A stretch of DNA of 45,893 bases from positions 1 to 45,893 of the forward strand of contig DF237616.1 in the NCBI GenBank assembly GCA_000708835.1, read 5' to 3'. The translations under genes and the position numbers were made by a program. The notes under the pieces are model-generated. The model was not told the DNA's origin. It searched no databases and saw only the letters and a list, made by a program, of their open reading frames with translations. This stretch comes from Klebsormidium nitens. Taxonomy: Eukaryota > Plantae > Klebsormidiophyceae. This document shows, in pieces, positions 18,701 through 45,300 of the stretch (position 1 is its first letter; each line of letters opens with the position of its first letter).

Positions 18701-21700
18701 GCCACCAGACGGAGGCCGTGGCGGCAGCGGGTGCGGCGTGTAGGGATCCCCATGCCCCGCCGCGGCAAAGGCCGCAGCAGCCTGATCGTCGTGGCGGGGA
18801 GACGAGTTGGTGGAGCGCGGGTGGCCCTCTAGTGCAGCCATGTCCCCCAGGCGGGCCAGGTTGTCTCGGGAGCGCACGCGCAGCATGCCTGCCTCCTGGG
18901 TGCTGGCAGGGGGGGAGGTGCGGCTGGGGTGCAAGGGGGGCAGGTCTGGGCGGGCATGCTCTGGTGGGCGGCCGTCGGCGTGCTGGTGCGCGTGCCAGAG
19001 CTCGTCGAAGGCCTGCAGCTGGTGCAGCTTGTGCTGCTGCTGCTGCTGGAGGTGCTCCGCGCTGAGGCCCCCCAGGTCCAGCCGCGGCGGGCCCGCAGAG
19101 TACGCGCCTGCGCCCAACTCGGGCCCCATGGTTGGCGTGTCGGTCGGCGAGCGACGANNNNNNNNNNNNNNNNNNNNNNNNNNNNNNNNNNNNNNNNNNN
19201 NNNNNNNNNNNNNNNNNNNNNNNNNNNNNNNNNNNNNNNNNNNNNNNNNNNNNNNNNNNNNNNNNNNNNNNNNNNNNNNNNNNNNNNNNNNNNNNNNNNN
19301 NNNNNNNNNNNNNNNNNNNNNNNNNNNNNNNNNNNNNNNNNNNNNNNNNNNNNNNNNNNNNNNNNNNNNNNNNNNNNNNNNNNNNNNNNNNNNNNNNNNN
19401 NNNNNNNNNNNNNNNNNNNNNNNNAGGTGGGGATGGTGCGCCAGGGAGTCGAGCACCAGAACATCCGTGCCCGGGGGGCCATAGTGCCCCCCACCTTGAT
19501 GACCATACTGAGGGCCAGTCCCAGGACGCTGCTCCACGTCGTCGAAATGATATGTGGTACGAAGGACGGACTGTGAAAGGAAGTAACAAGGGATATGAAT
19601 GCACTCTGATTAAAAAGAAAGGCTTGGAAACAAGTTAGTGGAGTGACCAGTCTCCGTTAGATCTATGTGTTCAGGAGCAGAGGCTGCACTCCATTGGCAA
19701 AGTACCCTGTCAGCAGGGTACTAGGCAAAACTACTAGTAACTGGAACATGATCCATCCTACAGACTTGGTTCTGACCAGACCTGCACCCTCAACTATGCA
19801 TCCAATGCAGTTAGACCATGCAAATCAACTGAGAAAAGCCCTTGAAAAGCCCTAACAAGTAGATTCGTAAGAGACACGAAGCTCGACTTAGACAGAAACA
19901 GCAAGCACTCCTTTCAGAGCGATTTTTTTTCCAATCAACCTCTCTTGATGGATGAAAAGTAACTGATGTTGCTTGAACCATACCTGCGGCACAGCATCCT
20001 CCATCCCAAAGTACTTCTCAAAGTTGGGCCCTGCATCTTCATAGGGCGCTCTCAACCCTTCTTTGCCCTCTGCCGGGAAGAGAAACAGCCGCAGCCGCTG
20101 CGCTTTGCCCTCTGCTGAGTTCCGCTCAATCTCGTCATACTCTTCCATCATGCTATTCAGGTCCTCGTCGTTGGACACCGACAGGAGCGTGTCCAAGTCC
20201 ATGTCGGGCAGCTGGTACTTGAGGCTCAGTGCTTCGCTGTAGTATTCTGTCAGCTTGAACATGAGCTCCGAGTACGTGATGTCCCGGCTCACAGTGAAAA
20301 TGCGCGTCTCGCCCCCCACATACCGCAACTTTCCATCCGTGAACTTTATCTCACCCCCAGCACTGCAAAGAAACTTGACCTTGAACATCCCCACCCCGTC
20401 CTCGCTCTGGCTGGACCCACGCCTGTGCTTCGACAGAGAGTGCGACCGCGCTGGCTGCATGCCACCTGGATCGGAGGGCCCTCCTGCCAGGGCCCGGGGT
20501 GGCGTCCGCGACAATTCTGAGGAGGGCCGCCGTGTCCGCTGTTCAACACCCCACACTGGATCCTCATTCTCCAGTCCAGCTAAAGCAGATCTTCGCGAGG
20601 CTGACTCTTCACCTGGTGGCGCTGATGCTTGCACTGCCAGCTCTGACCACTGCCTCGCTCCGTCCTCAGTGGTATCTATGTCACTTCCTTCAACAAGAAA
20701 TGACTTGTCCACTCCTGAGTGCTGGCCCACTCTGACCTCCCGTGAATAAGGATATCCTGCAGAATTTATACAGGTAGACCATTTTAAAGTGCAAGTTGAT
20801 TTATTTGAAATCCTCAGCCACAAGAGATCCATAGGGGACATCTACTCAGGATAGAGCACCAGGTGCAGGCAGATGATCAAAGCACGCTTACTCAAGCCGG
20901 TACCACTGCTTGAAAGTATCTTGGCAAACCCTCAAATACCAGAAAACCTTCCACAACTCTATGTTCCACAGCTGTTATCCCCAATGCATGCACTGAGGAT
21001 GCAGGTTGACAATGGATTCGCCACTTAGAAGATTGCCAATCAGCAAGTGAGAAGTCAAACAACCTTGTGAGCACATGAAAAGCTCCTTCAAATCGCTCGT
21101 TGCCACCCAGTACAAACTAAACACTACATTCCTGGGCATTCACATACCGTATGCACAAACCCTGCCGATCCATTGCAATTGATGATAAGTTACATAGTTG
21201 CACGTTGAAAGTACGTGCATGCAACCTGGTCCTACAATCCAGAAGTTGATATTGTTAAGCAATTGCTTCAATGGAGCGATGGAAGTGCAACCATCTACCC
21301 ACCTGCGTTTGCAACCCCAGTATCTGGTCCATTCCAACTGGTCTGCTGCCCATTCCTGAGTTGCAGAGTTGCAACGCTAGTCGAGTAGGGCTCCTCCAAG
21401 TTTTCGTTCCCTTTCTCTTGGAGCTGACGCACAGAAATACGCCCAGACGAGGAACGCGATGCTGCCATTGCTGAGTTAAGATCTAGCAGGTTGAAATTCT
21501 TTGAAGCATGCTCTATTTTTGGCTGTGTCCCAAAAGCAGACGAAGAGCTTCCAAACTGGGAAAGACCCTGGTCGAACCCTGTAATGCCCCCTAAAAAGTG
21601 CGAATCTTCTCTACTGCTTTCTTCCACGTCAACCTCAGATGCCGTGGACGTGAAAGGGGTCAAATCGGAATTCTCCGAAGACAGAGATGTTTGAGGAGAA

Positions 21701-35023: not shown

Positions 35024-36724
35024 CACGGCCAAACGAAGGACCGGGGGGGTGCGGTTACTTGAGACCTCCAGTCACAGGTTGCCCTTCCCGACGGAACAGT
35101 AGAGTAGACTTGTGCTATATTTATGTGTAGAGCGAGTTGTGGTGTTGTGTTTGGCGTGCTTTATCACTAAAACTTTGTGTTTGCCACGAACTAGAGTCAG
35201 TGTTTACATTTCGAAATAGGTTTGATGCTTACGGAAAGGTTTGGCATTGCACAGCGTGCATACGTGCGGCTGACCTTCTAGCTCCGAAATTCGGATTGGA
35301 TCGACTACCGGGAAGATCCGCTGGGGCTACGTTAGGAAAACTCTTCAAGTACAGAAGTTGCAAAAGGTTATGGAGCGGTTTTGTGTATACTCCTTAGTTG
35401 TGGAGACTAGAGATGAGGGAGTCTAGCGTACATTGAGCCTTGTTAAGGGGGACGCGGGCGCAAGCCAAAGTGTAGAAGTACGAAGATTCGCCATATGCGT
35501 CATTGCAGGGTTTTATGGTCTCACAGTGGACAGCAAGAAATGCTACAAGAAGATTATTGATCCTGTCGAACAAGTTGTGACGTCAAAGCACACACTTAAA
35601 TTGTACCTATCCCGACGGCAAGTGCCTTTGGGAGGACTGCATCGACAGCTTGAGATATATTCAATCTCGACTGCGGGTACTCACTCAAGTGATATGATAA
35701 GTTGTTATGCACATGTGCGCACGCATCACATGCAAATACAATTGCCAGGAAGCAATAGTGCAGACTCGGAGTACATATGATTCGGGCAGGCATATCAAAA
35801 CACAAAATTTGAGCATGCAAATTCGCAGTACGTATCTAGTCTTTCTCGACATGAAGGCACATCCTATCGGCTGCAGTCAATCATTGATGTACGTGCACAT
35901 GTACTGATGTATGTTAACCTGAGGCGCGGGAAATATGCCTAGTCGCCGGGCTTGTCGCGTGCACATGTGGGCGTGACCCGTATACTAATGGTTTACTAAG
36001 ATGCACATTGCAATACCAGTTCGACCCAATGATTGAGAACTGGCCCAATGATTGCATGCAAAAGACAAGTCCGACGGTACATCATTGCACACGGCCGGCT
36101 GGTTGTATGCTGTGTATAAGAGAGCTTCAATCTTGTGCACGGCATACACTGCGCGCATAATGTTGGGCACGCCATTCAACCTACAGAGCTTATACATTAC
36201 CATGTAAACCTAGCCGCCCACCAATGTTGAACGATTGAGTCGACCGGATGAGGCAGATTGATAGCAATCTCTCTCTGCCATGTACTACCTAGATGTAGAT
36301 TCTAAAGAATCAGAGCGCGACTGCGAGCTGCTTGCCATTTTTACCATGCAGTCGTTCGTTTTAATTCGTCCGACCATTAAAGTTTCCCAATCCTGAAATG
36401 AATGCTGTAATTCTTGAAGCCACTTACAGTAAGAACATAGGCATATGCATCCTGGACCTGCACTATAAGCTCCAAGTTTGTTTCCTGGAGTCCCTTTGAA
36501 AAGTGTCTCATTTGACGTAAGCATTCGATCCCCTAATCTGACATTGACTCATCCTTGACTTTCGTCCCGTGTAAAGGTAATGCAAAAAATCACTTAGGTG
36601 TCAAGGCTTGTAAGATAATGGAGGTTGTAAAGCGCGCTAACAAAATCTTACCAGAAGCAGCAAGCAACAATTCGGAAAGAAAGGCGGTACTGTCGGACTG
36701 GCCCAATGAGGCCTTTTGACGTAC

Positions 36725-39700
36725 TCAAGTCGCCAAGTCTGGTTTCGCTACGCTCTCCCGTTCCACGCTGGCACCCGTCTCTGCCCGCCTCCGCTCATCC
36801 AGGAACCCCGCCAGCACCTCCTTGGCTGCCCGGTACTGCACCGCCGCTCTCTTTGCGGTCTCCACGCTCTCAAATGCGCGTGCGGCTGGCGGCTGCTCGT
36901 CTCGCTCGGCGGTAACAGCGGCACTCTCGACCCCCGCGCCGGCATCTCCCAACTGCCGCACCTGCTCGAACATGCGCCGCCGCGACAGCCGCGACTCCCC
37001 CCCCGGCGGGGCATCCAGCCTGCCGTCCTCGGAGCGCACTCTCTCCAGCCCCTCGTCCCCCTCTGCCCAGCTCTCGCCGCACTCCGTCATCGGGGCGCCC
37101 GTCTCGACGCGGAACGTCCCCGAGACGCACGAGAAGGCCTGTGCCACCTGGGGCTGCCTCACCGTGAACGGCTCCGGCAGGCGTTCCGCCAGGCCGGCCA
37201 GCGCGCCGGCATTCCGGTACAGCTCCGCGTCCGCGTTGACCGTAACGGAGGTGAGGTAGACGGGCGGCAGCAGGTGCGCGAGCAGGCCGCCCTGCACGCC
37301 CACCACGGTCCAGCGCAGCACCTGCGGGAGGACGAAGAGGCGAGCATGGGAAGCAGCAGGAGGCGCCGAGACGTGTGAGGCAAACGCAGAGGGCGAGGCA
37401 CGTGCGGATACTAGGCGACAACCAAATAGGGTGGGGGTAAAAGGCGCCCAGCGCTGTTGCTAGCCTGGCAATCCTGGCGTCTGGTCGAAACTGAGGAGCC
37501 GAATACCGGATCTTCGCGGCCCTTCGACCTACCACACGAAACCTACATCAGAAGCACAGTCGGATTCCTTCAAAGTTGCCGTTTGAGCAATCAGACAATC
37601 AAGAATGCTCCTATCCAACGATCATTGGAAAAGATGCCATCCCCTCTTTTGCCGCAGCCCGTCCTCCGCCCCGTACCTTGACTTGCCGCGTCTCCCTTTC
37701 CATATCTTCCACTGCTCCGTTGTGCGCCTGCTGCGCCCGCGGCCGTGACACCCAGAGGTGCACCTTGACGCCGTCCCGCAGCCGCCACCGGCCCCCGCTC
37801 TCATCGCGGCAGACTACGGAGTCCTCCTCCGCAGCCCCGGTCTCTGTGCCAGCCACCTGCCCGTTTGCTTCCGCAGGGTTATCTAGACGAACCGCTTCTG
37901 CCTCTGCCCCAGGTTCTGGGACCGGCTCTGGCGTATCCGCCCCTGGTCCCCCGCTCTCCAGGCCCAGAGCCCAGGCATCCGGGGTAGCCTCTGCCGGCTG
38001 GTCGTCGCTCACGCCCTCCGTCATCTCGACCTTGGCTTTCTTCCCTCCCCGCACGTCGTCCAGCGGCTCCTCCTTCGCGCTGCCGCTCTCCTCCTCGTCG
38101 CTCTTGACGCTGTCCCGGGCTGCCTCGCCCACTGCCTCCATCGCACCCCCCCCGCCTTCCGCCGCCACTGCGGGGCCTGCCTCGGCAGCTGCATCTCCGC
38201 CGTTTGCAGCAGCGTCTGATTCCTCGACGGGGTCCGGGTTGACCGTCTCCAACGCCGTCCTTCCTCGTCGCCTCTCCTCGTGCAGCTCTCGCTCCAGCTG
38301 CGTGCACAAGAAGCGCCGGAACGCGCGCACGGCCAGCACCTCTGCGCGGCAGTCGCGCAGGGAGGCGTCGTCGCGGGCCAGCTGCGGGGCGGAGTGGCTG
38401 CCCGTGCCCAGGGCCACGCAGCGCAGCGCAGGCTCGCCGGCGGGGGATGGCAGCTCCAGGATGATGGCCGCCAGAACCTGCGGAGACACAGCAGTGAGAA
38501 ACTACGCTGAAGAAGAAAGGGGTGGCGTTGTGTACCCCACATGAATTGGCCGGACTGGACGTACGCACAAGGACAAGGTGATGATCTACGGGCGGACATA
38601 GCATGATCTTTCTCAGTTTAGATCCATAATCTGCTCAACCGCAGAACGTCCCGCCCTCCAGACTCGCAACTGCCCGAGTCTGTTTCCCCCTCGGAGTGGC
38701 CGGCTGCGCTCACCTTCTTCCCAGGCTGCGCGCTGCTGCTTGCCGGCAGCTGCCGGTACTTACGGCACGCCACCTTCGCCAACTTGTAAGCGAACGCATT
38801 GCTCCCCGCTCCCTCCGTCTTCCCATCATCCTGCTGGGAGTCGCGGCCTCCCAACTTCCTCTTCTTGTCTGCCCGCTCCCTCTCTAGCTTCTTGGGCCCC
38901 TCGCCCTGAACTGCGGGCGACGGCTCCGCCTGTGCTGTTTCCTTCCGCGCCTTCTTGGCCTTCCCCCGCGTGAGCTCCTCCAGTGTCCCCGGCCGCTGTG
39001 CCTCCAGGTGCTGCAGCACTGCGTCCGCCACCCCTTTCTTGGCCTCCCCCTTGCTCAGGCCCTCCGCAGTGAACGTGCGGCCGTCCACCGCAAACTCGGC
39101 CACGAACGCGGGCGTGACTGTCGGCAGCCGCCGGACCACGATCTCGAAGTGTGCCCCTCGGCGCATGGTGTACTCGTTGAGCAGGCTCACCGGGTCCTTC
39201 TCGGTGCCCGCCACCGAAGCATACACCCGCTTGCCCAATGCTGGGCCGGGGCTGGTTGCAGGTTCTACCAAGTGACTGGCTTGCGGCGCAGCTGGCGCGG
39301 TCCCAGATTCTCTGGACTGAGAACCGTCAGTCAGGGCCAACTCGACCCTGGCGGCAGAAGGGCCTTCTGGGGGCCCCTCTTTGTTCTGGGCCCCCTCTCC
39401 TGCGCTGCTGGTAACAGGAGGGGTCCTTCCTGCCTGCTGCGGTTGCGTTGCGCTGCCTGCAGTGGCGGGGCCCACCCCTGGGAGCATCTGCGCCAGCGCC
39501 GCTATTTCCTGTGCCGTCACTGCTGGCGCTGCGCTCTGGGCTGGCTTGCCCGCCACTTGGGGTCGCTGTTGGGCGGGCTGTGCGTCAGGTCCTTGCAGGC
39601 TCTCGAGGGCTGCGCGCGCCGCCAGCTTCTTGGCAACGTCCTTGCGTGGGGCGCCCGCCACAAAGAAGCGCCCTGCGATGGCCAGGCTGGCCGTGTGCGT

Positions 39701-41231
39701 GGGCCCCACCCAGCGGTCGCCCGCGTCCTCCGAGAAGCTGAAGACAGCATGCACCCCACGCTTCTGGCACAGCTCGTTGAGGGCGCTCATGGGATCTTTG
39801 GGCGCAGCGCCCGCCACTGCCGCGGCTGGCGGCCCGCCCTGAGCAACCGGGACCCAATTGCGCAGTCCCGGAACGCCGTTCAGCGCAGCCTCGGCTACCG
39901 CATTCTTGGCCGCTGGCTTGGAGGGGCCTGTTTGCGTGAACGTCTGGCCACAGACAATGAGGGTGGCGGTGTGGCGGGCAGTTACTTGGTCCGTTGAGAA
40001 GGAGTAGGCGGGGGCGGCCAGCTTGAGCTTCTGGCAGGCCTCGTTGAGCAGGCTGATGGCGTTCTTGACCAGGGGGGCAATGGCACCCCCCGCCCGGTAA
40101 GCCACCGGGCTGACCAGCACGCCTGCACAGCAGGGGAGCCATGCCTTGGATTGACAATTGTCTTTGCAGCGGAGAAGAAAGGTTGAGGATGCATCTTCTG
40201 GTGTTTGGCTTGCCATCTGGTGCGCTTTACAATTACTTTATTGAGGCGTTATCTATTCATATCGTGAGTGAGGGTGCAGCAAGCATGCGGCCAGGTGAAA
40301 TGACTGGCTTTACTCCACGACTCGCGCGAACCCAACTGTCCCATCACATACTAAACAAATTGGATGTGCCGACACCATGCCCTGTTTCATCGTTTGCACT
40401 TTCAGCTTCTCACGTCAACTTTTGCAGATTTGATCAGGTCATTGGGCCTTTTATCAGGGGCTTACATCGCAGGATCTAGTGGGGGCTACAGGCACATACC
40501 TTTCTGCTGTGCCGCTATCGTGTTGGGCACTGAGCGCGGAGCAAGTGCGGTGCTGGAGGGAGGCGACCGGTGGGGACATGCCGGGGATGGCCTCCTGGTC
40601 TGCCCATACGCAGGCGGACCACCCGGTTGTTGCAGTGGGGGGGCTGCCAGCTGGCTGGCGGGGTGGACCATTGACGGATGCTGCACAGTGTACTGGGGCG
40701 CGTGGCTGGGGACTGGCTCGTGAATGGCGCCCCCAGGAGGGTAGAAAGCGGGTGGGGCTTGCCAGGAAAGTGGTGGCTGCCCCAGGTGGTAAGGTGATGC
40801 AGAAACTGCACGCGGTTGACGAACTGTCAAGCTAGCGACTGGTGCATCCCAGATCTCAAATCAACAGATCCTGATGACCCAACTGCGCCTGTCAAGCCAT
40901 AAAGAGATTGCGTGGCTGCAACATGAGAATAATGTAAGAGCAGCCTGCCTTGCCTCTGGGACCCAGAGCTGCACCTGTGCAGTTCGACGCAGCTCATGTT
41001 AGGAGATCTTAAAAGGAGCTTTGCCCCTGGCAGCAGCAATGCAAAAGTTTGTGTCATGGTCCGCTCACCTGTGCCTGCTCCAATGCCAGCATGCGTCTGC
41101 TCCCAGCTCCCCAGGCTGCCCTGCCTGTAGTGGTACGGAAGTGCGCCGTTTGCTTCATTCTGAGACCTAGAAAGACCAGAGGCCCCTGCTCCTTGTGCCT
41201 GGTCCCACCCCACAGGCCTCCACGACGCCAT
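36725..41231 (-). CDS. ADAR-like protein: three dsRNA-binding motifs plus a degenerate adenosine-deaminase (editase) domain, ~1100 aa, 5 exons
   Basis: Exons 41231-41069, 40823(or 40838)-40500, 40122-38714, 38477-37677, 37321-36725; GT-AG with consistent phases. Editase motifs GKK|VLAAII, ALGTG, DCRAEVLAVRAFRRFL, RWRLRDGVKVHLWVS, K|VLRWTVVGVQGGLLAHLLPPVYLTSV, SRLSRRRMF, AKRAAVQYRAAK. Basic NLS-like KAKKARK and KKRK. The two 5' P/Q/G-rich exons are less certain. Confidence 0.88.
39005..39199 (-). other. dsRNA-binding motif 3 of the ADAR-like protein
   Basis: KDPVSLLNEY...PAFVAEFAVDGRTFTAEGLSKGEAKKGVADAVLQHL. Boundaries approximate. Confidence 0.85.
39597..39799 (-). other. dsRNA-binding motif 2 of the ADAR-like protein
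   Basis: KDPMSALNELCQK...GPTHTASLAIAGRFFVAGAPRKDVAKKLAARAALESL. Boundaries approximate. Confidence 0.85.
39872..40066 (-). other. dsRNA-binding motif 1 of the ADAR-like protein
   Basis: KNAISLLNEACQK...HTATLIVCGQTFTQTGPSKPAAKNAVAEAAL, an alpha-beta-beta-beta-alpha pattern. Boundaries approximate. Confidence 0.85.
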
Positions 41232-41577
41232 GCTCCTATATGGCTACACTTGCCAATCTGCTGGCCCCAATGTTGCTATCGGTGCACGTCAGGCCAGCTC
41301 AATGAGGGAATGCAAGGTTCCCGCAGGGTTCTTCACAAAGAGCTGCTGCAGTTGGATTTCAACACCTGTGCTACGAAGTTTGCCGAATGCCATACCTTTG
41401 CGTGTGTGTGTTTAACTTTCTTTGATTCCGCAATGCAGCGGTACCATGGCGGCCTTTGGCCTTCTGGGCATGACATTGATATACAGGTCCGCTAGCTAGC
41501 TGCCGCTGCGATTCAGCCTCAGCGACTCGGCCCGTCGGCGTCAGGGGGCGGCCCCTCGATCCGCCATGAGGCTGAGC

Positions 41578-41612
41578 TCCTGATTCCTGAATCCTGAATC
41601 CTGAATCCTGAT
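41578..41612. repeat. 7-bp tandem repeat (TCCTGAW)x5 upstream of the ADAR-like gene
   Basis: tcctgat tcctgaa tcctgaa tcctgaa tcctgat. Confidence 0.85.
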
Positions 41613-42323
41613 AGTAGTCTCAAGATCGACACTGGGTACAATGGACGGCTCGATCCTGACTTCAAAACTCATCGGACGGCTAGTAATGACGATGTCAGAA
41701 ATTCTGACATGCAGCCGGGCCAGCGACTGAGCAGTGCGGAAGTGCACAGTGCACGGCGGGCCGCGGTAGTAGTTGTAAGTACCAGTGTTCGTGGCGAAAC
41801 CTAATTGATTTCGCCAATTAGGTTTGCGCATTAAAGTTTGCGCACATTTGCGCATTCTGGTCAATTTCGCCAGCCTGGCGAAATTAGCCGCGGCCGCGCG
41901 CGGCCGCGCAAGAGGTACGCACGCCCGCGCGGGGCGCGCCGCTGGGCGCGCGGCGCGCCGCTTGCATTTTGGAGACTGCTCATTGGTTCAAGAACCTCGT
42001 ACCATGTGGACCAGATGGGGGAAGGTGATTCGCAATTATGAGCCATGTGTCCGCAACCGCAAAGAATCAACGTCAAGAATGCACAGACCTATCCAATCGA
42101 CGTTGCACAACCCTCAGACGTGATGACTGAGGTGGCACTGTCATTCGCGCCAAATAACACAAGTTGCCGGGTGTTGGCAGCCATGGGCCCATGATGGCAC
42201 TGCAACTCTGATGAGTCTAGGTAGCCTAACTGTGATTCATCGTCCATGATCTTGCCAAGCTTGCACTCTACAACAAATGTCTCAGTTCTTTGCAGCTGCG
42301 AGCTGAGGTCTGAGCTGCTCACC

Positions 42324-45300
42324 ATGGCGTCTCCTGGCTCTGATGGCGCGGGTGCTGCTACTGCTGGTGTATCTGGGGCCAGCCAGCAGTCTACTATGAC
42401 CAGCTTCTTAAAGAAGAGGCCGGGGCGGCCCAAAGGCGAAGTGTGGGAGCACTTTGAGAAGATCTCAGGGCCAGATGCTTCGAAGCGCCATGTGGTGAGG
42501 TGCAACCACTGTAACAAAGAGTCCACCGGCCGGGTGGAGCAGATGGTTATCCACATTGCGAACGAGTGCGGCAAAGCACCCACCGAAGAGAGGATGAAAA
42601 TGCTGGAGAAACTGGGTGCAAAGGCTGACGCAGCAGACGAGAATCCAGCTAAGAAGCAGAAGGGCAGCACTGGGGTCCAGCAAAGGATCAACTATCACGT
42701 CGACACCTCGAAGGTGACGGCAGCTCAGAAGAAGGCCTTGGACCTGAAGCTGCTGCTGCTATTTGTCATGTGCGGCATCCCGTTCATGGTGGCCAGCAGT
42801 CCTTGGTTCCTGGACTTTGTCCATGCTCTGAGGCCTAACTACAATCCAGCAGGTATGTCCTCCTCAAACAGCTGAACTTGGTCATCATTTGAGGGGTGGT
42901 AGTATAGAGGCAAGCATCCTTGGATAGACAAGTACGAATATTGATTATCCTTCAGTGTGCCTTGGATGGGCCAGGAGGTTTATCCGTATCCTCTGTTGAG
43001 ACTGTATCCAGAGAAGCAGATTGCCCTGTTGGCGTGCTTTCTTTCATCATAGTCTTTGGTGAGCACTCTTCCAGAAGTTACTGGACCTGGTCGGTTCCAT
43101 GTGTTGCGCACAAGGGTGTACTGAGACAAGATGGAGAGCTGGGTTGTAATCCATGGTCGTTTAGTCAAGTTCTTTTGTTCACTCAGTTGTAGCTGACTCA
43201 TAAACGTGTGCAACTCCATCCTTCTGCAGGCGACTATGCACTGCGAACATCCTTGCTGCTGCAAGAGGCTGCGAGAGTGGAGTTAGCAGTGCGCCAGGAT
43301 TTGAAACGAAGAAGCATGTGACCCTGACTCTCGACGGCTGGACTGATGCACAGAAAAAATCCGTCTATGGTTACACCGCCACATTCCCGGACAGGCAGGC
43401 GCGCGTGCTCAAGATAGAAGACTACTTTGAAGACAAGCACACATCTGAGTTTCTCGCTGGTAAGGGACAAGAGGGTTGCGTGGATCTATTCATTGCCTTG
43501 TTCTTCACCTCGTGCAAATGCACTAAGCACAAACTCAAACTTGTCAGCTTGGCATTCGCAACTTTGATCAAGCGCATTCCTGCTGGCTTCATCTGATTGC
43601 CTATCACAACATGCAGAAAGGGCATTGTTCCATATCGCGCAATGGGGTTTTGACAAGTTTATCGCCCTCGTCACGGACAACGCGGCCAACATGGTGAAGA
43701 TGCGCGCTCTGGTTCTACGCCACCCACAGGCCAGACATATGATCAGCTTAAGGTACAACTCTAACTGGTGGTCTCCTTTTGGTTTACGACTTTCTGCATG
43801 GGTTTCCATTCTAAGTATTCGTTGAAGCTGCGTCGTTCTTTGCATATTGATCAGCAGATTTGCTTGCTTGCTCAGCTTGATATTCTGGTCAAAGGACCCA
43901 GGCACGTGACTACAGTGCAAAAGCCTTTTGAATCGGTGAGAGGATTCTCTGCTGCGGGCTATCCAGTGTTTCGAGACCCAACTCTTCCTTGTCTGTAGGT
44001 GTTTCATGCACGCGTTTGCACTGTTCATCGGCTCCATTTTAGGCCACCAGTGGGCAGCCCCTCTCATCTCTGACGCCCAGCGCGTCGTCACCCATTTCCG
44101 CGCCAGCCACCGCTGCCTTGCTCTTCTCAACAAGCTCGCTAAAGCTTTAGGTATCTCTAGGGGATTGCAAACTTCCAATAAGACCCGTTTCACTTCCGTT
44201 CACAACTGCCTCCAGTCAGTCGTTGAAAACGAGAGGGCACTCCAGGCTGTCGTCCAGCAACACCCTGAGGTCTTCACCGCACCTCGCAACGGCACTTCAA
44301 ATCCTAAAACCATCATCCAAGACCGGCTCCTTTGGCCCAAGCTTGAGGCCCTCTGCAACCTTCTAGAACCATATAGCCAGGTCATCACTGCCATCCAGTC
44401 ACGTAACGCCACAATAGCAGACGTCGCACGCTACTTTCTCTATCTAGGACAGCAGGTTAAGAAGGTACAGGCAAACGAGCTCCTACCTCTCGATTTTAAG
44501 AACCATTGTGTTCTTACTTTCAACAAGCGTTTCAAGGAGATGGATCACCCAATTCTACACCTAGCGCTCTTCCTCCATCCCTACTACAAGGCGGCTGCTG
44601 ACCAGAGGTCTCAATTCTTGACAATTAGTACAACGGTGAGCTCATTCAGCCACTGATTTTTGCTTTTTAGTAGCTGACTCGAACAATTTGGCCACCTTAG
44701 ACGCTCTTCCAGAGCTCAGGTCAAGGAGTCTCTATTGTGGCAAGATTGAGAATCGAGCTGAATCACAAACTGTTTGATGAACAGATCCCTGCCACATATA
44801 TCTTTAACTCACCACTCTGCTCCGCTTTCGGGAAGCGCGTCTTGTATTGGAGGTTGTTTTGATAACCTCCTTGACTGTCATGGACCAATCGGAATTGCCG
44901 TGATTGCCCTTGTAAATCACAGCATTGTAGGCAGGGCTGTTTGCAGAAATCAAACTTGCCAACTGCGCACTACCTTTCCCTTTTGTGAAGTTGCTCACAA
45001 GATTCCGGATTGCGATTTCATGTTTCCATTGTCTTCTCTTTGCAGGCAGTAGAGCTCTGGAAGAACTACGGCCATAGCCCCGCCGAAGTCAAGCAGCTGA
45101 TGCACGAGATGGTGATGTACAAGGCAGGGGAGGGTCCTTTTGGGCTCGTCATTGCCCCAGAAACATTCGACCTTCGCCTATGGTGGCAGACCGTGCGCAA
45201 CAAGCAGTACAACACCCTGGCGGCCCTCGCCCTCATCATCGCCGACATCGTCCCACATGCTGGAGACATCGAGCGAGTCTTTAGCATGATGGGATGGATG

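Follow-up and report, generated by a model that had tools for sequence, protein, structure and literature searches.

A conserved algal gene joining three double-stranded RNA-binding motifs to a putatively inactive editase domain in Klebsormidium nitens

A gene located on the minus strand of contig DF237616.1 from Klebsormidium nitens (GenBank assembly GCA_000708835.1) encodes three double-stranded RNA-binding motifs (dsRBMs) and an editase domain of the ADAR/ADAT family (A_deamin) in a single protein. The window, i.e. the whole stretch of DNA analysed, comprises 45,893 nt, and all positions given here refer to it. The locus proves to be a genuine nuclear gene with five exons, expressed in an alga of the green lineage (streptophyte-type). 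Its arrangement, with dsRBMs at the N-terminus and an A_deamin domain at the C-terminus, is that of metazoan ADAR1 and ADAR2, and the number of dsRBMs is that of vertebrate ADAR1. The product is probably a nuclear double-stranded RNA (dsRNA)-binding pseudo-deaminase representing a deep branch of the A_deamin family, one that belongs neither to ADAT1/TAD1 nor to the crown metazoan ADARs, and its editase is, judging from the residues at the active site, almost certainly a dead pseudo-enzyme. The original prediction, drawn from the letters of the window, had seen in this gene an undescribed dsRNA-handling system; this stays plausible for binding and, given the loss of the zinc site, does not hold for editing. 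The finding, though real and interesting, is less dramatic than first proposed.

In the mechanism favoured here, the dsRBMs would bind double-stranded RNA, as suggested by the GPTH and KxAKK motifs of dsRBM2, and the protein would probably act in the nucleus, to which its KKARK and KKRK motifs point. By analogy with ADAD1/2, ADR-1 and ADAR3, the dead editase fold would be a structural element or a surface for contact with proteins or RNA, and A-to-I conversion by the protein is not expected. The dsRBMs were probably gained independently of those of animal ADARs. The protein should not be classed with the ADARs, since the catalytic site that defines them was tested and found wanting; its architecture is that of an ADAR, and its mode of action most likely that of their inactive relatives.

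Transcript, domains and conservation

RNA contigs from four runs of four studies, aligned to the window, join five exons into one mRNA of ~3.95 kb through the joints 41069/40805, 40500/40122, 38714/38477 and 37677/37321, and single contigs of 3945-3960 nt span all five exons in two runs (X7 and X12). Introns 1-4 (263, 377, 236 and 355 nt) all have GT..AG ends. The spliced mRNA carries a single open reading frame (ORF) of 1091 amino acids that begins with the ATG at 41231, itself preceded by an in-frame stop, and ends with the stop codon at 36725; before splicing, the domains are spread over three long minus-strand ORFs (38618-40216, 37611-38489 and 36725-37321). The predicted union of three dsRBMs and an editase in one spliced frame is thus borne out, the coordinates and exon borders first given are right, the dsRBM exon proposed at 40122-38714 being exact according to the contig joints, and the concern that dsRBM and deaminase exons might form separate transcripts is answered by single contigs joining both. 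Splice variants at the locus consist only of low-depth intron-retention contigs in the four RNA runs. Twenty runs labelled as RNA, which stem from seven studies and bear two organism labels, contain the transcript (word shares 0.17-0.82). GC content amounts to 69% in the coding sequence (77% at third codon positions), 49-58% in the introns and 43% in the 3′ untranslated region (UTR).

The ATG at 40216, considered as a possible gene start, is ruled out because it falls inside intron 2.

The protein comprises, in order, a Pro/Gln-rich N-terminus, the three dsRBMs, basic motifs resembling nuclear localisation signals and, over residues ~597-1072, the A_deamin domain. Each dsRBM, scored separately, exceeds the Pfam gathering cut-off for dsrm (23 bits), and the A_deamin match, which also passes its cut-off, is split, exon 4 matching profile positions 1-51 (E 5.7e-11) and exon 5 positions 150-319 (E 2.3e-20); the Pfam check thus agrees with the domains originally proposed. 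The GPTH and KDVAKK sequences of dsRBM2 (GPxH and KxAKK) are what we take to be canonical dsRBM motifs. The editase half encoded by exon 5 aligns with PDB chains of ADAR1, ADR-2 and ADAR2.

Orthologues were recovered by an exon-5 HMMER search over 1.84 billion cluster representatives, which gave two close clusters, and by a dsRBM-exon search, which gave a third relative and in which only three orthologous exons were matched among 5.8 billion proteins. Three Logan runs supplied the loci L001, L002 and L078, and a 49-kb JGI metagenome contig the fourth (L003). All four repeat a three-exon layout (dsrm, weak A_deamin, A_deamin), and intron positions and GT..AG ends are conserved across them. In five taxa the frame remains unbroken along 2.4-2.8 kb of the aligned coding sequence, and along 3.3 kb for the full ORF of the window. 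From these searches, the gene appears confined to a small clade of related algae.

The closest orthologue is locus L078 (3168-4142), with 78% identity to the window in the dsRBM exon; it too lacks both Cys ligands of the deaminase.

The ratio of non-synonymous to synonymous substitution (dN/dS), estimated by the Nei-Gojobori method between the window and L078, identifies dsRBM2 as the most constrained part of the gene (0.063), followed by dsRBM3 (0.109) and dsRBM1 (0.36), while the three editase segments give 0.30-0.37 and the linkers and acidic insert 0.6-0.7. The dsRBMs are strongly constrained and the dead editase fold moderately so. Low values within the domains thereby indicate a maintained pseudo-enzyme and not a decaying one.

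The editase active site

Residue numbers follow macaque ADARB1 (P0224), whose H394, C451 and C516 coincide with those of ADAR2. Arginine occupies all three zinc-ligand positions of the algal domain, H394 corresponding to R670 (codon 38348-38346), C451 to R873 (37739-37737) and C516 to R890 (37688-37686), so that of the His-Cys-Cys site and catalytic Glu that characterise ADARs only the latter is left, E396 being kept as E672 (38342-38340). Direct alignment with ADAR2 chains pairs ndcHAE with rdcRAE. The absence of Cys at both Cys-ligand positions is common to the window and all four orthologues, as is a deletion between them. The first ligand motif reads DCRAE in four of the five sequences and DCHAE in L078, a one-base Arg/His change, and the catalytic Glu is retained in all five.

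The two Cys-equivalent positions are separated by 17 residues, compared with 63-107 in seven active or ADAD sequences, and therefore ~48 residues of the ADAR RNA-contact region are deleted. In the ADAR2 structure, this stretch contains the base-flipping loop and the 5′ RNA-binding loop. An extra exon supplying the missing SCSDK region was considered and ruled out, the contigs having a single 37677/37321 joint and the intron no coding-like frame.

Beside the catalytic Glu, the algal protein shares with ADAR1 and ADAR2 a K-V-L-R-W sequence (K-x-x-R-W) and the C-terminal K/Y/K positions in an AK..Y..AAK pattern. We take these to be K519/R522/W523 and K662/Y668/K672 of ADAR2, which contact inositol hexakisphosphate, and on this basis the core of the editase fold may persist.

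Phylogenetic position and competing origins

Most named matches of the exon-5 search are animal ADAR or ADAD proteins; a plant TAD1 cluster (P0020/P0237) ranks 20th (E 1.8e-6), and a sponge ADAT1 cluster is also above threshold. Averaged over the trimmed domain, identity to plant TAD1 amounts to 24.3% and that to metazoan ADAR/ADAD to 23.6%, compared with 28.9% between ADAR and ADAT1, and therefore the algal domain is equidistant from the two families and more divergent from them than they are from each other. The four peptide segments on which a closer resemblance to ADAR1 than to Tad1 had been founded are all found in the translation, and the ADAR1 strings compared with them appear in the PDB alignment; the resemblance nonetheless fails over the whole domain, and plant TAD1 matches the key segment equally well. 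The segment following the third ligand is likewise very similar in plant TAD1, where its counterpart is RWTVVGVQGGLLAHLLPPVY.

A tree of 72 deaminase domains (397 columns) was computed with IQ-TREE under LG+C20+F+G4 with posterior mean site frequencies. It included three algal sequences, 36 metazoan ADAR/ADAD domains (identified by their names or, for those without one, by where they fell in the tree), 20 ADAT1 of animals, a single named TAD1 from plants, six plant-like TAD1 loci pieced together out of tblastn segments, two protist ADAT1 ORFs and four chlorophyte ORFs combining leucine-rich repeats (LRRs) with A_deamin. ADAT1 seeds were obtained through cluster names, then through a sponge ADAT1 search and a metagenome scan. 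Seeding a protein search with P0037 brought up animal ADAR2-type proteins only, used as tree rows, and no ADAT1, and an ESM Atlas search with exon 5 gave no meaningful match.

The algal clade (support 100/100) lies outside the ADAT1 clan of animals, plants and protists (100/99) and outside the metazoan ADAR/ADAD split (97/87), and it does not group with ADAD1 or ADAD2. It attaches at the centre of the tree beside the LRR clade, where branch lengths are only 0.013-0.023, and in the maximum-likelihood (ML) tree it adjoins the ADAT1 clan at negligible support (58/0). Among the origins first envisaged, nesting within plant TAD1 is rejected and a deep independent position is the one recovered in the tree, while an origin inside the animal ADARs is disfavoured by the metazoan split. 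A recent TAD1-derived fusion is therefore disfavoured and a recent animal-to-alga transfer unlikely; an old ADAR-type ancestor and an independent gain of dsRBMs on a deep 'ADAR-like' branch are both compatible with the tree.

Several points weigh against a pseudo-deaminase on a deep branch of its own. The algal stem, at 1.4 changes per site, is a long one and its amino-acid composition is atypical, so that rapid change following the loss of catalysis may account in part for the deep placement. The His of L078 indicates that the first ligand site is not rigidly fixed, and dN/dS values of 0.3-0.6 in the editase correspond to moderate constraint only. Moreover, dsRNA binding, localisation and inactivity are all read from the sequence.

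Among the other explanations, a lineage-specific convergent fusion, in which the alga's own TAD1/ADAT1 was duplicated and one copy acquired dsRBMs, ceased to be catalytic and was expelled from the TAD1 clade by fast evolution, is unlikely. It would account for an identity to plant TAD1 as high as that to ADARs, for the presence of the plant TAD1 cluster among the exon-5 matches, for the restriction of the family to a few related algae, and for the long stem, skewed composition and ML position beside the ADAT1 clan. The approximately unbiased (AU) test, however, rejects a grouping of the algal clade with plant TAD1 (log-likelihood difference, delta lnL, 20.9; p 0.004), the ADAT1 clan excludes the algal clade under a site-heterogeneous model, and a rough comparison limited to the boundaries of high-scoring segment pairs revealed no intron position common to the algal gene and plant TAD1 loci.

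Slightly harder to credit is a true ancient ADAR, i.e. a gene with dsRBMs and editase that predates the animal/plant split and was kept and inactivated in the algal lineage. The architecture is the same as in ADAR1/ADAR2, the named exon-5 matches are mostly ADAR or ADAD, a position as sister to all metazoan ADAR/ADAD is not rejected (delta lnL 0.08, AU p 0.405), and non-ADAT1 'ADAR-like' domains occur in many protists (PMC11946409). Yet the protist ADAR-likes described so far have no dsRBDs (dsRNA-binding domains; PMC11946409) and the chlorophyte relatives bear LRRs in place of dsRBMs, and therefore many independent losses or swaps of dsRBMs would be needed; in addition, unicellular relatives of animals lack ADARs (PMC4323055; bioRxiv 10.1101/2020.01.19.911685) and the central branches of the tree are tiny. 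It is accordingly doubtful that the combination predates animals, with chlorophyte LRR-deaminases and protist ADAR-likes as domain-swapped relatives of a dead algal descendant.

It is improbable that an ancestor of these algae long ago acquired an animal ADAR or ADAD by horizontal transfer, and that the gene then gained introns, adapted in GC content and decayed at its active site. A grouping of the algal clade with the ADAR2 clan is not rejected (delta lnL 7.8, AU p 0.112), and the best PDB matches of the dsRBMs are the animal proteins ILF3, ADAR1, ADAR2 and Staufen, these being generic dsRBM matches in a database biased towards animal proteins. Against these stand the metazoan ADAR/ADAD clan formed without the algal clade, an identity of only ~24%, and the four introns, GC-rich coding sequence and conservation in several algal taxa, which show long residence.

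Very improbable is a contaminant, an assembly artefact or a functionless decaying pseudogene, in spite of the degenerate deaminase motifs and long low-complexity inserts. Transcription in 20 runs of seven studies, open frames in five taxa and dN/dS well below 1 in the domains all speak against it, and a DNA run under the same organism label contains an identical locus, introns included. The alternation of GC-rich and AT-poorer blocks seen in the gene repeats across the window. A PB1-domain ORF (19888-20841, minus strand, Pfam E 1.6e-18), 16 kb from the gene, has as its nearest ESM Atlas clusters (scores 0.90-0.92) mostly Streptophyta; the streptophyte lineage is deduced from these clusters and from the run labels. 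Orthologues are also found in related samples; the initial argument against contamination holds, and contamination is very unlikely.

Finally, an active A-to-I editase of unusual type with a different metal site is hardly conceivable: the catalytic Glu of all five orthologues and the His of one would suit it, but Cys is found at neither Cys-ligand position in any of them, the region of the base-flipping loop is deleted, and no RNA/DNA differences are found across the locus in the contigs of four RNA runs, which is weak evidence because contigs drop rare variants.

Known systems, features and surroundings of the gene

The best functional analogy for the pseudo-deaminase proposed here would be with ADAD1/ADAD2 (Tenr), C. 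elegans ADR-1 and ADAR3, which likewise join dsRBM(s) to a catalytically incompetent deaminase domain and suggest RNA binding or regulation without editing. These animal proteins arose inside the metazoan ADAR radiation, whereas the algal protein groups apart, and ADR-1 and ADAR3 work beside active ADARs, whereas the algal protein has no known active partner. Unlike ADAR1/ADAR2, it is devoid of zinc ligands, of the ~48 RNA-contact residues and of a Z-alpha domain, contains an acidic insert of 155 amino acids, falls outside the metazoan clan and resides in an alga. The tRNA A37 deaminase ADAT1/Tad1, known as TAD1 in plants, belongs to the same Pfam family, but is catalytically intact and without dsRBM, whereas the algal protein combines three dsRBMs with a dead site and is placed outside the ADAT1 clan.

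Grice and Degnan described the ADAR family as a metazoan innovation resulting from the addition of dsRB domains to an ADAT-like gene (PMC4323055), and an editome study of 22 species did not find ADAR-like genes in unicellular holozoans (bioRxiv 10.1101/2020.01.19.911685). In a 2025 study, 'ADAR-like' deaminase domains without dsRBDs were reported in 24 protist species including Ostreococcus, while the streptophyte algae Chlorokybus and Mesostigma had ADAT only or nothing (PMC11946409, main text and Table S8). Among the papers searched on ADAR in Klebsormidium and on ADAR-like proteins in algae, no description of a comparable gene was found. A conserved, expressed protein with three dsRBMs and an editase fold in a green alga implies that this architecture arose at least twice or predates animals, and the gene gives the deep non-ADAT1 branch of the A_deamin family a representative from the green lineage. 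With its zinc site gone, it lends no support to ADAR-type editing in the plant lineage; its value is that of an evolutionary data point and of a candidate dsRNA-binding regulator in a culturable alga.

Like the protist ADAR-likes and the chlorophyte LRR proteins (L023-L034, L073), the algal protein carries a non-metazoan A_deamin domain outside the ADAT clade. The chlorophyte proteins share its green lineage, and a sister relation, absent from the ML tree, is not rejected (delta lnL 0.11, AU p 0.389). Unlike the algal protein, both groups are without dsRBDs, have other N-terminal domains (here LRR) and keep HAE, PCG and CSDK.

On marine metagenome contigs (L023-L025, L027, L028, L032-L034 and L073, e.g. 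L073:2027-5194), intron-less ORFs of ~930-1070 amino acids contain LRR_6 repeats followed by a C-terminal A_deamin domain in which HAE, PCG and CSDK are intact. The ESM Atlas clusters of these ORFs are mostly from Chlorophyta, and in the tree the ORFs branch deeply as a clade separate from both ADAT1 and metazoan ADAR. They probably correspond to the 'ADAR-like' proteins of Ostreococcus (PMC11946409).

The features of the locus are collected in Table 1. The 5′ end of exon 1 is approximate, the contigs extending 77-83 nt beyond 41500, and the 3′ end of exon 3 reads ...GKK/gtgagc. Within the poorly conserved acidic insert, which comes after the first ligand motif, the orthologue alignment reveals the conserved islands GGKKAKVE and AWALGLESG.

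Table 1. Positions of the exons, domains and conserved motifs of the gene in the window
Feature	Position	Strand	Description	Evidence
Exon 1	41069..41580	-	~349 nt 5′ UTR and start of coding sequence; codes for low-complexity N-terminus	RNA contigs, ORF
Exon 2	40500..40805	-	Pro/Gln-rich low-complexity, ~residues 55-156	Joints in 4 RNA runs, translation
Exon 3	38714..40122	-	Three dsRBMs, linkers, basic motifs like nuclear localisation signals, first editase helix	RNA contigs, Pfam
dsRBM1	39878..40060	-		Pfam dsrm 31.1 bits, E 3.7e-07
dsRBM2	39596..39793	-	GPTH and KDVAKK motifs	Pfam dsrm 35.7 bits, E 1.3e-08
Linker motif VT(A/P)QEI(A/V)ALAQ(M/L)LPG(V/L)	39473..39520	-	Between dsRBM2 and dsRBM3, outside Pfam domains	All five orthologues
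dsRBM3	39005..39193	-		Pfam dsrm 25.1 bits, E 2.7e-05
Basic stretches KAKKARK (38962-38942) and DKKRKL (38869-38852)	38852..38962	-	Look like a bipartite nuclear localisation signal	Kept in orthologues
N-terminal editase part	38283..38803	-	Split by intron 3 (38713-38478); contains DCRAE	A_deamin 1-51
Acidic insert	37818..38282	-	~155 amino acids within editase domain, poorly conserved	dN/dS 0.70
Island KKAKV	38025-38048	-	Outside Pfam domains	Conserved in all five orthologues
Island AALGxESG	37950-37979	-	Outside Pfam domains	Conserved in all five orthologues
Mid-editase part	37677..37817	-	RWRLRDGVKVHLWVS-RPRAQQ...; carries R873 and R890	
Exon 5, coding part	36725..37321	-	C-terminal editase half, from KVLRW... 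to stop codon 36727-36725	A_deamin 150-319
3′ UTR	36383..36724	-	~340 nt	RNA contigs end at 36338-36401

The 5′ UTR (41232-41580) contains several upstream ATGs with short ORFs, e.g. ATGGCGGATCGAGGGGCCGCCCCCTGA.

Run X29, listed as 'DNA?' under a different organism label, contains the spliced joints of the gene (36300-41500) in two sequence variants. Because spliced exon joints are found in it, this run has cDNA content or is mislabelled, and a related strain or species therefore also expresses the gene.

Pfam analysis of 30 neighbouring ORFs detected only PB1 and zf-BED domains. The BED zinc finger ORF (42246-42875, plus strand, Pfam E 1.7e-05) lies ~0.7 kb upstream of the transcription start and may derive from a transposase.

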